From Macrostomum lignano (lineage: Eukaryota), in NCBI GenBank assembly GCA_002269645.1, contig NIVC01000016.1:558001-622000 (forward strand): DNA of 64,000 bases, given 5' to 3'. Positions 8,681 through 62,390 of this stretch are shown one piece after another; position 1 is the stretch's first letter; each line of letters starts with the position of its first letter. Position numbers and translations under genes: made by a program. The notes beneath the pieces are model-generated. The model was not told the DNA's origin and did no database searches. It saw only the letters and a list, made by a program, of their open reading frames with translations.

Positions 8681-9339
8681 TATACGTGAACGTGAAGCTG
8701 GGTGAGTGTAATTCTAAGCCTCCCTTAGTTACCAGACAGGAAAAGCGCACAGGTGTTTTACAGTGACTTTCAGAACACCACTTAGCTAGCAGAAGAGAAT
8801 CTTGAGAGAAAGGAAGAGTTACCTAACCGCCAGCTACATCAAGGTAAGCCGTCTGTCCAGCTGGCCCGAGAACACAAAAAGCCATTTATTGCGCTGGCCT
8901 CGCCGCTGCCTTGGCGGGGTGGCTCCGGCAGACGAGATTGAATCAATTTTAACAACACTTTGGGATAGCCTTCCCTCTGCCTCCCTTCCTCCCCTTGTTC
9001 CCAACCGACTTAATAATCCCCCGCTGAGCCGCCCGTTCCCTTGACGACTGCAGGGTCCATCCAGTGCAACTCCCACCGGCTGGGCAGTTGCTCCAAGCAT
9101 GTTGCGGGCTGAGGCTTGCTTGAAATTCTTTTTAACGTCATCGCAGACGGCGGCGGCGGTGGTTGGGCAAACGTTTTTTCTTTAAAAAATTGAGGGAATT
9201 TCTCCATTAGCCTGTCAGGGGAGCAGATCGTTATCGGGCCGGGTCACTTTTCCCTCTCTCCGCTCCGTCCCTGTGTGCGCATTTTGCTTCTTTTCCTAAG
9301 CTGAACTTCCTTCTCTGCTCTGATCCTGGCTGCTTCAAC

Positions 9340-35195: not shown

Positions 35196-36159
35196 TGAAA
35201 CCTCCCTGCGCTACTGCTCACTACTGCTCCACACGCATCCGCTGACCATCAGCTGGATGAAGCAGCCAAAAGAATGGCAATAAATTTCTGTCTAACCTGT
35301 CACTTTCATCCCCACTCATCATCATTAACAGGCCGCACTCTGCAGCTCCCCCTCTCCTAATCCTATCTGTCAGTTCTCTCAAACAAAGGGCCAAGCCATC
35401 CCAGTCGCGTGGACAAGAGGTCGCTGCCCTCTCGGCGTTAATCCAGTTGAGTTTCCAGCAGCCACGCAGCCTCATCAGTCTCTGCTGTTCGGCATTCTCA
35501 TCGCCCTGTCACAGACTCAAGTCAGATTTTGGCGAGATAAATAATTCAGAAACAATAGACTGGAGCGATCACGGCACTCAAAAATACCCTGTCTTCCCAA
35601 ATCCCCAAAACACAGTGAGGATGAGTACAATGGAATAGTCACAAAATCTCCCCATGATGGGATTCTACTTCGTATACTCAAATTATTGTCCCCTCGGGTT
35701 AGTCCTCACCTACCACGACAACTTCCACACCCCGCGGCAAACTGCGATTGCACTCACTACTGAATCGATGAAGGAAAATGCCCATGGCAACGAAAATAAG
35801 AGATGAAGAGTTTTGCCGATTAATTGACTGATTGATTAGCAGTGTATTTGGCGGCGGAAGTTGGCTAATATGAGAATGTGTCAGCCTGAGGTGCGCAATT
35901 TGCAGTTTTGTTAATCGATTTGCCGACCATTCTTTGATGGCCGGGATGCTGTATTTCTATAGTACTCATCCAGCCATGCTGACAAGTTGGCGCTGGCGCC
36001 ATCAGAGATGGGGCTGAAATGATTTTTGGTTTGACATAAAATCTCATTCCTGCTCAGTGCTCATTCATTCCTCTCTTTACTTCTCTTAGCCTGTCTCATC
36101 TCTCTCTCTCTCCTGTCTCTCTCCTATCTGCTCATGAATCTCCCTCTTACCTCTCACCT

Positions 36160-36800
36160 CTCCTTCTGACCTCTCTCCCCCTCTCCCTCTGACCTCTCTC
36201 CCCCTCTCCCTCTGACCTCTCTCCCCCTCTCCCTCTGACCTCTCTCCCCCTCTCCCTCTGACCTCTCTCCCCCTCTCCCTCTGACCTCTCTCCCCCTCTC
36301 CCTCTGACCTCTCTCCCCCTCTCCCTCTGACCTCTCTCCCCCTCTCCCTCTGACCTCTCTCCCCCACTCCCTCTGACCTCTCTCCCCCTCTCCCTCTGAC
36401 CTCTCTCCCCCTCTCCCTCTGACCTCTCTCCCCCTCTCCCTCTGACCTCTCTCCCCCTCTCCCTCTGACCTCTCTCCCCCACTCCCTCTGACCTCTCTCC
36501 CCCTCTCCCTCTGACCTCTCTCCCCCTCTCCCTCTGACCTCTCTGCCCCTCTCCATCTGACCTCTCTCCCCCTTCTCCCTCTGACCTCTCTCGCCCTCTC
36601 CATCTGACCTCTCTCCCCCTCTCCCTCTGACCTCTCTCCCTCTGACCTCTCTCGCCCTCTCCCTCTGACCTCTCTGCCCCTCTCCATCTGACCTCTCTCC
36701 CCCTTCTCCCTCTGACCTCTCTCCCCCTCTCCCTCTGACCTCTCTCCCCCTCTCCCTCTGACCTCTCTTCCCTCTCCCTCACCTCTCTCCCCCTAACCTT
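36160..36800. repeat. 23-bp minisatellite CTCTGACCTCTCTCCCCCTCTCC just 3' of the kinase gene
   Basis: Direct reading. Confidence 0.93.
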
Positions 36801-36876
36801 CCTCTCCCCATCCTCTCTCATCTTCAATGGAATCGAATCTCTTCTTACATCAAAGCGCGCAATCCCAGCTTTGCAC

Positions 36877-39826
36877 TCAATTTTCCAGATCCGGTTCGCA
36901 GCTGCTGTAAAATCTGTCGAGTTCCTGCAGCACTCTGGTGGAAGTCGGTCGCTGAGCCGAGTTCAGGGCCAGGCACGGTCTGAACACCCTGTCGCACAGG
37001 TCTAGATAGCACCTGTCGCTGATAAGCAGCCCTGCCTGCGGCGACGGCGGCTGCTGCACTGACGAGTCGCCCAGCAGGCTCAGTCGCAGCTCGGGCTCAC
37101 CGCCGCCAGAGGCGCGCCGGCCGGTGAACAGCTCCAGCAGGGTGACGCCAAGGGCGTACACGTCCACCTTGCAGGACAGGAGCTCGCCAGGTGCGCCTGG
37201 CCTGTCCGGTTCTCCCGGCACGAAGTAGCCATTGGTGAAGTAGCGGATTCTGGGCTGCGAGGACTGCGGCCTGTCTTCCATCCGCGTGAGGCCCGAGCCT
37301 GCGGTGGCCGTCTGATGGGGCAGGAATGGAGACTGTGATGAGGCTGCTTATAGGGACAATTTGGAATCATTCATCCCTCCTTGTTGGCGTTAAACTACAG
37401 TGGTCCTTGGCGTTATACTGCAGTGGTCCTTGGTGTTATACTACAGTGGTCCTTGGCGCGGGAGGAGGAAGGGAAGGAGAGTCTGAGACTGAGAACGGAG
37501 AGCAGCCCCTACTCAGAGGACGGAGCAGCCTCAACTCAGTTGCCTGAGCAGCCGCGATCTCCCCAGACACACCTGCAGGCTGTCCCCGATCTCCCCAACA
37601 CCTGCAGGCTGTCCCCGATCTCCCCAGACACACCTGCAGGCTGTCCCCGATCTCCCCAGACGCACCTGCAGGCTGTCCCCGATCTCCTCAGACGCACCTG
37701 CAGGCTGTCCCCGATCTCCCCAGACACACCTGCAGGCTGTCCCCGATCTCCCCAACACCTGCAGGCTGTCCCCGATCTCCCCAGACACACCTGCAGGCTG
37801 TCCCCGATCTCCCCAGACACACCTGCAGGCTGCCCCCGATCTCCCCAGACACACCTGCAGGCTGTCCCCGATCTCCCCAGACACACCTGCAGGCTGTCCA
37901 GGTCACCCAGCTTGCAGTGCCAGTCAGCAGTGAGCAGCACGTTGGTGCTCTTCACATCCTGGTGCGCCAGGCTGAAGCTGCGCCAGTCGCCAGCCGCTGC
38001 GGCTTCGACCTCCTGCCGGCTGTGCAGGAAGTCCAGGGCGCTGGCCAGCTCGTGCGCCATCCGGATTCGAACTCCGGCCAGCTGGAACTCGCAGGCGGGC
38101 GGTGCCCGGCCGGCGGCGAAGTCGTCAATCAGCTGCCGCAGGTTGCCGGCCTCGCACAGCTCGTAGACCAGCAGGAGGTCGCCGCCCGCCGCCTCGCCGC
38201 GGTGAGCGAAGCCGAGCAGCGACAGCAGCCGGGGATGGCGGAGGCCCGCCTGGCGCCGCAGCGCCTCCAGCGGGATGCCCGCAGAGTCGGGCAGCAGCTT
38301 CTTGACGGCGACCGGCCGCCCTGCCAGGTTCACCCGGTACACGCGGCCGAAGCTGCCGGCTCCGAGCTCCTCGCCGACCTGGCGGACCGCGGCATCCAGC
38401 TCGGCGAAGCTGAACTCCTGCAGCCCGGCCTCACCGTCCTCGGCCTCGGCCGCGGCCAGCAGCGTCTGCAGGCGGCCCCGCAGCACCGCGGCGGTGCACC
38501 TCTCGGCGAAGTTGTGCAGCAGGCAGGGCGCCACGGCTTCTCTGCAGACGCGGGCGTGCAGACCTGCGGACAGCCGCAGCCCCGGCTGAGGCGGCGGAGC
38601 CCGACCGTCGGCCAGGGCCCAGCAGAGCCAGGACTCCTCCGGAGTGTCGCTGCTGGCGGGCTGGCCGCGCAGGCCGGTGAGCAGCTCCAAGATGGTGACC
38701 CCGGTGCTGAAGACGTCCCACTTGCAGGTGACTCGGTCTTCGGGCGGCCGGTAGCCCAGCGTGTGCACTCTGGCCACCTGCTGGGCCCGCTGCTCACCCC
38801 AGACGGTCTGGCCGAGCCCTGCGGTGGTCAGGTCGAGGAAGTCCAGGTCGGCGAGGCGGCAGCGCCAGTCGCCGTCAACCAGGATGTTGCTGGGTTTCAC
38901 ATCCTTGTGCACGAAGCTGAAGCTGAGGAGGCCGGCCCGCTCGTCTCGCGCCATCGACTTCTCCTCGGTGGCGTGCAGGAACTCCACGGCCGAGGCGATG
39001 TCGGTTGCCATGCGGAGCCGCGTGCCGCCCAGGTGAAACCCGCTGGCCACCGCCTCCGCCGACGACCACCAGCTGTGGGGCTCGGCGAACCGGTCGAGCA
39101 GCTGGCGGAGGTCGCCGTTGCTGTGGAAGTCGAACACGGAGTACATGCGGTCGTCGGCGGGCGAGTAGCCGAAGCCGACCAGCCGAGCGATGCTCGGGTG
39201 CCGCAGGCCGCTGAGGGCGCCGATCGACCTGCGGATGGCCTGGCGCGCCTCCTCGCTGATGCCCGGTCGGTAGACCTTCACCGCGTGCTGCCGGCCTTCG
39301 ACCAGCGCTGCCGTCCGGAAGACCTCGGCGAAGCCGCCCGAGCCGATCAGGGAGCCGCAGGCCACGGCGCGCCGGAGCTGCTCCGCCGGGAACTCCAGCG
39401 GCGAGTCGTCTGGTGGAAGCGGAGGCGGAGGCGGAGGCGGGGGCGGGGGCGGGGCAGAGGGGACGGAGGGGGCGGCTCCGCAGTCGTGGGCGGAGGCTGC
39501 CAGGCCTGGTTCAGCAGGTTGGACCGCACGAAGGCCTCGGCTTCGCGAAGTCCTCGACGGCTCAGGACCTCCAGCAGCTCTTCAAGGCTGCAGCTGCGCT
39601 CCCACAGCAGCAGGGCGGCCGCGGCTTCTCCGCCAGGACTCTGGCAGACCAGCAGGGCCTGGTCGGCTGACAGAGGCCGGCCCTCAGAGTCCAGGTAGTC
39701 TTCAACCAGAGCTCGCCAAGATTCGCCTTGCTGCAGCTTGCGGCCCAGGATGGCCCAGGTGGATGGGTAGCGAGCTCGCACCTGGTGCAGTCTGGTGCGC
39801 AGGTTCAGCGGCTGGCGGAGCGGCAT
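36877..39826 (-). CDS. Death domain + tandem (2x) Pelle/IRAK-family kinase protein, about 791 aa; exons 39826-37887 and 37311-36877; 1-nt frameshift at G4 39451-39454
   Basis: ATG at 39826 (MPLRQPLNL). The N-terminal helical domain has a death-fold pattern (WRALVEDY...SPGGEAAAALLLW...SLEELLEVLSRRGLREAEAFV), followed by a poly-Pro linker. Kinase 1: GSGGFA, HAVK, HKDVKPSNILV, ADLD, YRPPE, DVFSTG. Kinase 2: GAGSFG, VAVKK, HQDVKSTNVLL, GDLD, DVYALG. Each is preceded by an RLK/Pelle-type EF(S/P)xxELxxA-like motif. Adding one base to the G4 run (its neighbours are G5) joins the DD frame to the kinase frame. Splice CTGCAG|GT (37887/37886) to CAG|ACG (37312/37311) is phase 0 and gives DLDSLQ-TATAGSG, colinear with kinase 1 DLDFLDLTTAGLG. 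TGA at 36877-36879. Confidence 0.85.
37312..37886 (-). other. 575-nt GT-AG intron in the activation segment of kinase domain 2
   Basis: Donor CAG|GTGTGT; acceptor tccattcctgccccatcag|ACG. Splicing restores colinearity with kinase domain 1. Confidence 0.8.
37555..37899 (-). repeat. 32-bp minisatellite (11 copies) made of the exon/intron donor junction GGGGACAGCCTGCAG|GTGTGTCTGGGGAGATC
   Basis: CTGCAG at 37887, 37855, 37823, 37791, 37759, 37730, 37698, 37666, 37634, 37602 and 37573. Confidence 0.95.
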
Positions 39827-60594: not shown

Positions 60595-61281
60595 GTATCC
60601 ATTCTGAGCTGCCTGCTGCCTGCAGAATTTCTTGTACACAACAGCAGCATTAGCAGTTGAGCTAACCTGTCTACCTGTTAATTGATTGACACAAGCACAC
60701 ACCTGTCCATTCCAATGCACTGCTCTCGCGGCTACCCCATTCTGTATAAAAAAACTTCTAAACAAATCAGTTTGTAGTTTTTTTTTTCTTTGTAGCTCTA
60801 ATCCCCCCGCCTAGTAATTCCTTGACTATGGATGCAATGCCTATTAATACTATGTCACAGTCTGTGATCTTGACAGATTAATCCCCTAATCCCGCTTATT
60901 AAACAGTTCAAGTCTGCCTTCTACAATCAGTCGCTTTACTGTTTTTCCTTGTCTAATCATGTCGTATTAATTAATCGATATTTTCTATTTCTCTTATCAA
61001 AATAATAACTATATTGAAACAGAATCTCAGGGGGCCAGTGTACAGGATCGCGGCAATTTCTTATTGATCCTAGCAAATTTATTATCTTGCTCTGTACAAG
61101 CGCATGCCCTACTGTTGCTACTCTGTCTAGTAAAGTGAGTAGTATTCGAGGCAATTTTTTTCCTGTGAATTTTTTGTTTTGTTTAAATAGGTCTGATAAG
61201 ATTTTACGCATTGTAGGGCGCTTAATTAGTATCCAGCCATGTTCTGTAATGCCTTCCATTATCCTCTTATAATATTGCCAT

Positions 61282-62390
61282 CTGATCCCATATGAGAGTC
61301 TCCCTCTGACCCCATCTGGGAGTCGCCCTCTGACCCCATCTGAGAGTCGCCCTCTGATCCCATCTGAGAGTCGCCCTCTGACCCCATCTGAGAGTCGCCC
61401 TCTGACCCCATCTGGGAGTCGCCCTCTGACCCCATCTGAGAGTCGCCCTCTGACCCCATATGGGAGTCGCCCTCTGACCCCATCTGAGAGTCGCCCTCTG
61501 ACCCCATCTGAGAGTCGCCCTCTGACCCCATCTGAGAGTCGCCCTCTGACCCCATAAGAGAATCGCCCTTTGACCCCATATGAGAGTCGCCCTCTGACCC
61601 CATATGAGAGTCGCCCTCTGACCCCATCTGAGAGTCGCCCTCTGACCCCATATGAGAGTCTCCCTCTGACCCCATCTGAGAGTCGCCCTCTGACCCCATA
61701 TGAGAGTCTCCCTCTGACCCCATATGAGAGTCGCCCTCTGACTCCATAAGAGAATCGCCCTCTGACCCCATCTGAGAGTCGCCCTCTGATCCCATAAGAG
61801 AATCGCCCTCTGACCCCATCTGAGAGTCGCCCTCTGACCCCATAAGAGAATCGCCCTCTGATCCCATCTGAGAGTCTCCCTCTGACCCCATATGAGAGTC
61901 GCCCTCTGACCCCATAAGAGAATCGCCCTCTGACCCCATATGAGAGTCTCCCTCTGACCCCATCTGAGAGTCGCCCTCTGACCCCATCTGAGAGTCGCCC
62001 TCTGACTGAGAGTCGCCCTCTGATCCCATCTGAGAGTCGCCCTCTGACCCCATGAGAGAATCGCCCTCTGACCCCATCTGAGAGTCGCCCTCTGACCTCA
62101 TCTGAGGGTCGCCCTCTGACCCCATGAGAGAATCGCCCTCTGACCCCATCTGAGAGTCGCCTTCTGACCCCATCTGAGAGTCGCCCTCTGACCCCATGAG
62201 AGAATCGCCCTCTGACCCCATATGAGAGTCTCCCTCTGACCTCATATGAGAGTCTCCCTCTGACCCCATGAGAGAATCGCCCTCTGACCCCATGAGAGTC
62301 GCCCTCTGACCCCATCTGAGGGTCGCCCTCTGACCCCATGAGAGTAGCCCTCTGACCCCATCTGAGAGTCGCCCTCTGACCCCATGAGAG
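61282..62390. repeat. 24-bp minisatellite CCCTCTGACCCCATCTGAGAGTCG
   Basis: About 46 copies; intronic under the 60594-62920 splice model. Confidence 0.95.

Follow-up and report, generated by a model that had tools for sequence, protein, structure and literature searches.

A gene for two tandem RLK/Pelle-IRAK-type kinase domains in the flatworm Macrostomum lignano and its possible fusion to an N-terminal helical domain

The window analyzed here is a stretch of 64,000 nucleotides from the genome of the flatworm Macrostomum lignano (positions 558,001 to 622,000 of contig NIVC01000016.1; all coordinates below are those of the window). On its minus strand lies the locus Mlig022961.g1, a real, transcribed, lineage-restricted gene of M. 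lignano whose main body consists of two tandem kinases of the RLK/Pelle-IRAK type (hereinafter K1 and K2). The coding sequence can be read from an ATG at 39826-39824 to a TGA stop codon at 36877-36879, in two open reading frames (ORFs) that are one base apart: the upstream ORF encodes a predicted helical domain and a Pro-rich stretch, and the downstream ORF encodes a poly-Pro run and the kinases (Table 1). A protein search started with the joined model of both ORFs identifies a 100% identical GenBank entry, PAA94098.1, from the same M. lignano contig (922 kb); this product is a truncated "hypothetical protein" of 564 amino acids (aa). An initial annotation of the DNA had proposed an animal immune protein composed of a death domain (DD), a poly-Pro linker and two kinase folds.

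The first exon of the kinase frame encodes the poly-Pro run, the complete K1, and the N-lobe and catalytic loop of K2, and ends at a CAG/GT donor (37887/37886). The following intron (575 bp, GT-AG, phase 0) yields the join DLDSLQ/TATAGSG exactly as in PAA94098.1; the same join is found in the UniProt models, and the intron is far more diverged between the two genomic copies of this locus than the exons are. Because the GenBank annotation is based on RNA-seq-guided transcripts (StringTie/TACO, followed by TransDecoder; PMC5730564) and uses this very intron, the locus is transcribed and spliced as predicted, and the two kinase domains are contained in one ORF plus one RNA-supported intron. Of the two junctions required for the joined mRNA that the initial annotation envisaged, that at 37886/37312 coincides with the GenBank splice join; the other, at 39451, is one base out of frame and has no canonical intron. 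PAA94098.1 starts at an internal Met (MYSVF, from position 39173 downward) in the middle of K1, which is the first ATG of the kinase frame, and thus contains neither the N-terminal domain nor the linker nor the N-lobe of K1; the UniProt models, which come from the older ML2 assembly, are N-terminally truncated too. Given that there is no in-frame ATG upstream of MYSVF, the K1 N-lobe needs upstream coding sequence. A second copy of the gene, Mlig022961g2, is found in the genome on contig NIVC01003316.1 (locus L001); synteny with the window extends for more than 20 kb at 96-99% identity, as would be expected from the partial duplication of the genome that is known for DV1, the line sequenced (PMC5730564).

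The exon-intron boundary within K2 is embedded in an 11-copy tandem repeat of a 32-bp unit that starts 13 nt inside the exon and continues into the intron. The repeat copies each reproduce the donor site, ...GACAGCCTGCAG/GTGTGT, and so provide potential alternative donors, most of them frame-shifting; when the repeat is read through, the frame stays open for 609 codons. The second genomic copy contains fewer 32-bp units (deletions of 12, 29 and 29 bp) and, in its intron, a 253-bp expansion of a 23-bp intronic repeat.

A Pfam search with the joined model detects two kinase stretches (Pkinase, E = 5e-37; PK_Tyr_Ser-Thr, E = 3e-32). When each domain is used separately in a sequence search of the PDB, plant RLKs come out best (E-values from 1e-15 to 1e-12), with CERK1 at the top (1e-15 and 2e-14), followed by FLS2, SYMRK, BRI1 and FERONIA; the top 16-18 matches are all plant RLKs or RLCKs. 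Human IRAK4 is found in this search at about 1e-9, at or near the top among human kinases, though by sequence not clearly above B-Raf and DDR1, and the bacterial PknB scores alongside. In the full-length AlphaFold model, which was built from an alignment of 45 sequences, the kinase cores reach predicted local distance difference test (pLDDT) values of 85-95. A Foldseek search started with this model places JAK first, with two kinase folds aligned in series at a template modelling (TM) score of only 0.27; after JAK, IRAK4 fills nearly all the top places (TM 0.78-0.83), joined by a few plant RLKs. When 1.84 billion representative sequences are searched exhaustively, plant multi-kinase models and a Capsaspora "TKL/IRAK" protein head the list; because plant gene models that contain 3-15 kinase stretches inflate this ranking, per-domain scores were used instead. 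There is no animal or flatworm relative among the 20 source-named sequences of the 150 matches listed in this search. With plant RLKs as the best sequence matches and IRAK4 as the best single-domain structural match, both kinase domains are best assigned to the RLK/Pelle-IRAK branch of the TKL group.

In alignments with CERK1, HKD of K1 and HQD of K2 fall on the HRD motif, and DLD falls on DFG in both domains. The position of the alphaC Glu is occupied by Ser in K1, and in K2 a Glu lies one residue out of register. The counterpart of the APE motif is PPE in K1; in K2 it is PGE, which is aligned with PPE of CERK1. The gatekeeper, which we take to be the position of IRAK4 Tyr262, is Phe in K1 and Tyr in K2, the latter aligned to the Tyr of CERK1 LVYEF. 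The extensions that precede the G-loops, EFPAEQL in K1 and EFSFAEL in K2, align to EFSYEEL of CERK1. Both K1 and K2 retain the catalytic Lys (K183 and K508, respectively, in the joined model), Asp and Asn as well as the first, metal-binding Asp of DLD, and sequence alone does not identify either domain as a pseudokinase. Thus, the two full kinase folds, their RLK/Pelle-IRAK affinity, the non-RD catalytic loops, the replacement of DFG by DLD and the alphaC Ser of K1, all of which the initial annotation had read from the translation, are recovered here; the degenerate APE that it saw in K2 (YFVPGE) is indeed altered, but the Glu is kept.

K1 and K2 are 35% identical (E = 5e-48) and score 131-143 bits against each other, compared with 59 bits for the best other domain in the case of K1 and 80 bits in the case of K2, among the fetched top matches of the exhaustive search. 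The two domains share two insertions that are absent from CERK1, one before alphaE and another before the catalytic loop, and the strings FxLxGxRxRMA, SFSxxHxD and DWxCxLxDLD occur in both. This mutual similarity, along with the shared insertions and strings, indicates that K1 and K2 arose by a lineage-specific duplication within this gene, in agreement with the origin first suggested for them. The best single-domain relative of K2 (the 80-bit match, P0073) has an SH3-kinase-RING architecture, and another unusual architecture, ankyrin-kinase-RING, is found in P0144, among the database matches for which the domain make-up was checked.

The domain encoded by the N-terminal ORF, about 105 aa in length and predicted to be helical, shows a codon-like GC pattern in its frame (0.75/0.49/0.77 at the three codon positions). 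Its proposed identity as a death-fold domain receives no significant support from Pfam, the PDB, homologue searches, hhalign or Foldseek. The Pfam search with the joined model yields nothing at E <= 1 for this region, and a phmmer search of the PDB yields nothing at E <= 10. A word-indexed search of 5.8 billion proteins with the N-terminal domain alone finds no homologue, not even its own ORF, which means that the N-terminal ORF has been annotated by nobody. No match in the exhaustive search extends to query residues below 88, phmmer --max against all the fetched proteins is null, and so is BLASTP against the death domains of human IRAK4 and MyD88 (sequences checked against PDB chains 8dks_A and 6i3n_M). 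Single-sequence AlphaFold modelling produces seven short helices with low confidence (pLDDT 56), and the full-length run reproduces the same helices with no improvement (pLDDT 33-62); for the region as a whole, both runs give values of about 50-56. The Foldseek search with the single-sequence model gives no significant match (best E = 2.8); the 18 weak matches include two death domains, those of Pelle (E = 6.6, TM about 0.3) and p75NTR (E = 9). Finally, hhalign aligns the domain to an IRAK4 DD profile, made from a small alignment of close vertebrate sequences, with a non-significant score of 13.4 (P = 0.13) and to MyD88 with a score of 14.5, within the range of 100 shuffles (mean 11.1, standard deviation 2.5, maximum 20.3), whereas MyD88 DD, used as the positive control, reaches 25.5 with the IRAK4 profile (P = 5e-4).

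These null results lend substance to an alternative under which the N-terminal region is a lineage-specific helical segment, and the gene encodes a tandem TKL kinase instead of a DD-kinase of the IRAK/Pelle type. We regard this alternative as a serious contender, a little short of an even chance; it concerns only the identity of the domain and is compatible with any gene model. Against it stands the notorious divergence of death domains, which limits the power of the tests: the IRAK4 DD itself finds only the DDs of IRAK3 and IRAK2, at E of about 1e-3, and a Pfam Death match is not on record for the majority of IRAK4 DD fragments. Furthermore, the size, the position and the number of helices are right for a death domain, death domains account for two of the 18 weak matches in Foldseek, and the hhalign alignment to the IRAK4 DD, although non-significant, is colinear over 86 columns and by eye pairs typical death-domain motifs (ESWRAL with EGWKKL; LLLWE-RSCSLEELLEVL with LLFDWGTTNCTVGDLVDLL). 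A death fold is thus undemonstrated by any tool used but is possible, with roughly even odds.

Whether the helical domain and the kinases belong to one chain hinges on a single base in the linker. The poly-Pro linker of the initial annotation is seen in the three-frame translation, and in the AlphaFold model its residues 102-137 have pLDDT below 50. The offset maps to the sequence CTG-CCCCG-CCCCCG-CCCCCG-CCTCCG..., in which the first unit contains four C's (39451-39454) and its neighbours five; with one more C, the sequence would read ...SPLPPPPPPPPP... and about 791 codons would be open as one ORF. The offset thus falls on a homopolymer run, surrounded by sequence with about 90% GC, in a genome that was assembled from PacBio reads with Canu, followed by one Pilon round, with only 64% error-free bases according to REAPR (PMC5730564), and single-base indels between the two genomic copies are frequent in the flanks. 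Codon-position GC periodicity is detectable in both frames, and its phase flips within 39466-39406, inside the linker. Ten of the 14 coding substitutions between the copies are synonymous, all 10 at third positions of the proposed frames, including 2 of 2 in the frame of the helical domain and 2 in the poly-Pro frame; this is a significant excess over the expected 26.5% (binomial P = 7e-4). The synonymous excess and the lightly polished PacBio assembly favour, but do not prove, an assembly error. Accordingly, a fused protein of about 790 aa, with the offset being an uncorrected homopolymer error of the Canu/Pilon assembly, is the reading we prefer, with an estimated probability of about 0.5.

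Several observations count against such a fusion. The second copy, although assembled independently, has the same one-base offset, plus an in-frame 6-bp insertion, so the offset may be real and older than the duplication, and it also has a further 1-nt deletion inside K1 that is compatible with decay. No database protein includes the N-terminal ORF, no gene model joins this ORF to the kinases, and no product spanning the junction is present in the protein collections searched. When every GT/GC..AG pair with a length of 3n+2 is listed from the helical domain to the G-loop, no GT-AG candidate for a frame-repairing intron emerges, only poor GC-AG ones. The selection test is based on 14 substitutions only, and the overall coding divergence (0.6%) is no lower than that of the cleanest flanks.

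Hence the alternative that the frameshift is real, in which case the N-terminal ORF would end as a protein of about 160 aa with a Pro/Arg-rich tail, the kinases would be translated only from the internal Met of MYSVF, without the K1 N-lobe, and the fusion would have existed only in an ancestor of a recently disabled or decaying locus. Apart from the identical offset in both copies and the lack of a canonical repairing intron, this scenario accounts for the choice of the internal Met by TransDecoder on the annotated transcript and is in line with the state of the second copy, whose GenBank protein is only 202 aa long because of the extra deletion in K1. Yet the 10 synonymous versus 4 non-synonymous changes since the split of the copies fall in exactly the proposed frames, the motifs of the K1 N-lobe are intact, and a homopolymer in about 90% GC is where PacBio consensus and Illumina polishing both do poorly, so a real frameshift appears rather unlikely. 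The deletion in the second copy (L001, about position 9290, equivalent to window position 38771) lies in a non-homopolymer context, where GGCCAGAG has become GGCCGAG, and could reflect either an assembly error or decay of the homeologue.

Considerably less probable is the production of two proteins, namely a helical protein translated from the ATG at 39826 and a tandem-kinase protein from an mRNA formed by spliced-leader (SL) trans-splicing in the linker, with the AUG of the leader as the start codon. The M. lignano spliced leader ends with ...TTGCATG and thus carries a 3'-terminal AUG, trans-splicing and operons involve about 30% and about 15% of the genes, respectively, in this species (PMC8629364), and there are AGs in the kinase frame just upstream of K1, e.g., CTGGAG/TTC at about 39393. 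However, the two ORFs overlap, unlike the normal spacing in operons, no pyrimidine tract precedes the candidate acceptors, the annotated coding sequence starts elsewhere, and nothing specific, including read evidence, supports an SL acceptor. One could also imagine slippage by -1 of the ribosome or the polymerase on the C5 run, but nothing supports it.

Contamination or the recent acquisition of a plant or algal gene by horizontal transfer, as might be suspected from the plant RLK models among the top database matches and from the GC content of the coding sequence (0.70, versus 0.48 for the window), is rejected as highly improbable on the grounds of synteny, repeat context and low identity: the gene resides inside the 922-kb M. 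lignano contig, flanked by species-typical minisatellites, its second copy is syntenic over more than 20 kb, it matches plant kinases at no more than 30-37% identity, a high GC content is also seen in the neighbouring zinc-finger gene (0.64), and the best single-domain structural neighbour is the animal IRAK4. The GC content of the kinase gene, with 0.86 at third codon positions, is at the upper end for the locus, yet not foreign.

Table 1. Features of the tandem kinase locus and its surroundings in the window
Feature	Position	Strand	Model residues	Basis and remarks
N-terminal helical domain (proposed death domain)	39512..39826	-	1-105	ORF frame
Pro-rich low-complexity linker, (CCCCCG)/(CCTCCG) hexamer repeat	39411..39511	-		three-frame translation; holds the one-base offset
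Kinase domain 1 (K1)	38439..39410	-	139-462	Pfam, CERK1 alignment, AlphaFold, Foldseek
K1 motifs, N-lobe: G-loop GSGGFA; AVK Lys; alphaC-position Ser	39327-39344; 39270-39287; 39213-39233	-		CERK1 alignment
K1 motifs: HKD; DLD; PPE	38886-38912; 38838-38852; 38739-38756	-		also EFPAEQL extension and Phe gatekeeper
Kinase domain 2 (K2), first part	37887..38438	-	463-646	exon end CAG/GT; Pfam, CERK1 alignment
K2 motifs: HQD; DLD	37941-37967; 37893-37907	-		also EFSFAEL extension, G-loop GAGSFG, VAVK Lys, Tyr gatekeeper (LVYEL)
Intron	37312..37886	-		GT..AG, phase 0, within the K2 activation segment
Last exon, K2 C-lobe	36877..37311	-	647-790	GYFVPGE, DVYALG, AQRPTS, TGA 36877-36879
32-bp tandem repeat, 11 copies	37555-37899			K2 exon and intron
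23-bp tandem repeat, 22 copies	36139-36794			unit given on the + strand
593-codon ORF antisense to the kinase gene	37917-39698	+		no protein-like features
C2H2 zinc-finger ORF, intronless, 796 aa	54575-56965	+		Pfam zf-C2H2, E = 3e-18

About 28% of the window (1-64000) is occupied by some 29 unrelated minisatellite arrays, densest within 1-41500; the units are 4-34 bp long, the arrays span 0.3-1.2 kb and recur every 1-2 kb, and the spacers are mutually dissimilar. Many of the long "ORFs" of the window are translated minisatellite arrays (e.g., 60957-62339 and 36086-36827, both on the minus strand). One such array, the 22-copy repeat of a 23-bp unit (TCTCCCTCTGACCTCTCTCCCCC, plus strand), begins 83 bp downstream of the stop codon of the kinase gene and is located in or just after the likely 3' untranslated region; no AATAAA is seen in the approximately 80 bases between the stop codon and this array. 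The long antisense ORF is explained by the scarcity of stop codons in a coding sequence with 70% GC. The C2H2 zinc-finger ORF (GC 0.64), which has a Gln-rich N-terminus, is probably a neighbouring gene. A scan for prokaryote-style promoters and terminators is uninformative for this eukaryote.

Among the known systems, IRAK4 and Pelle resemble the M. lignano protein in the kinase fold, which is its closest single-domain structural match, in the helical extension with an F-S-F-x-E-L-type motif before each kinase, in the Tyr of K2 at the presumed gatekeeper position, and in the presence of a helical module of about 100 aa and a Pro-rich linker where IRAKs carry the death domain. The differences are that IRAK and Pelle are single kinases acting downstream of TIR/DD adaptors (MyD88/Tube) and Toll/IL-1 receptors, whereas here there are two kinase domains, with non-RD HKD/HQD and DLD motifs, sequence identity of only about 22-24%, and no demonstrable death domain. 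The plant RLKs and RLCKs (CERK1, FLS2, SYMRK, BRI1, PBL2) provide the best PDB sequence matches for both domains and dominate the exhaustive search, and FLS2 is a non-RD kinase, as are K1 and K2. Unlike these proteins, to which it is about 30-37% identical, the M. lignano protein belongs to an animal, has neither an ectodomain nor a transmembrane segment, and contains the two lineage-specific insertions in both kinase domains.

The plant tandem kinases (RPG1, WTK1/Yr15) similarly combine two RLK/Pelle-type kinase domains in one cytoplasmic chain, with one domain showing a weakened catalytic signature, as does K1 with its Ser in place of the alphaC Glu. There is, however, no orthology, K1 and K2 being each other's closest relatives; both of them retain the catalytic Lys, Asp, Asn and Asp, and there is an extra N-terminal helical domain, whereas the plant class is marked by a clear pseudokinase and by pathogen recognition with NLR helpers, and no evidence connects the M. 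lignano protein with immunity. The "TKL/IRAK protein kinase" of the holozoan Capsaspora owczarzaki (KJE90737.1, P0014), which is among the five best matches of the exhaustive search (E = 3e-32), also has IRAK-type kinase stretches in tandem; it differs in its N-terminal leucine-rich repeats, three kinase stretches and length of 1270 aa, is about 32% identical, and has no domain similar to the N-terminal one of M. lignano. The JAK family, with its pseudokinase-kinase tandem, is the top Foldseek match because two folds align in series; it belongs to the tyrosine kinase group, has FERM-SH2 N-terminal modules, and superimposes poorly (TM of only 0.27, root-mean-square deviation above 20 A). A limited survey of the literature found no description of an animal DD-kinase-kinase or tandem IRAK protein, so that, within this survey, the architecture put forward in the initial annotation is not an already described family.

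A survey of Toll-like receptors (TLRs) reports none in M. lignano (PMC8609888), and parasitic flatworms are reported to lack IRAKs (PMC4484250). Given these absences, a canonical Myddosome-type role is unlikely, and the Myddosome and immune analogy drawn at the outset has no evidence behind it; an immune role for the M. lignano tandem kinase is speculative, and so is the suggestion in the initial annotation of a kinase-pseudokinase sensor that converged with the plant tandem kinases. If the two ORFs are indeed fused, the full product would most likely be a cytoplasmic protein of about 790 aa, with the helical domain of about 105 aa followed by the disordered poly-Pro linker, K1 and K2. By analogy with other systems, the helical module at the N-terminus, which may be a death fold that has diverged strongly, might recruit or oligomerize the protein. 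K2, in which the G-loop, the Lys, the catalytic Asp and Asn and the Tyr gatekeeper are retained and a Glu adjoins the alphaC position, would be the likelier catalytic unit, and K1, with Ser in alphaC and the Phe gatekeeper, the likelier regulatory or scaffold partner, as in other tandem kinase/pseudokinase pairs. Because both kinases are non-RD and have DLD in place of DFG, activation would not need the usual activation-loop phosphate clamp. The comparison thus suggests a model with a regulatory K1, an enzymatic K2 and an N-terminal oligomerizer. The stronger proposal that the fused protein carries a cryptic death fold and is an IRAK-derived DD-kinase-kinase, in which a degenerate K1 serves as the sensor or decoy for an active K2, is a long shot.

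With a real frameshift, or with an N-terminal domain other than a death fold, the locus would simply represent a divergent, lineage-specific tandem kinase gene. The locus is also an example of how domain architectures can be obscured in the Mlig_3_7 assembly by indels of one base in GC-rich homopolymers. Should the DD-kinase-kinase proposal turn out to be true, the protein would be an animal counterpart of the plant tandem-kinase immune receptors that functions without Toll receptors, in a phylum that is believed to have lost its TLRs and, in the parasitic members, its IRAKs as well. A fused protein, if it exists, would be the first animal protein of the RLK/Pelle-IRAK type with two tandem kinase domains to be described; coming from an early-branching flatworm, it would bear on the evolution of the IRAK branch after the loss of the upstream pathway and would offer a test of the repeated origin of tandem kinase/pseudokinase designs.

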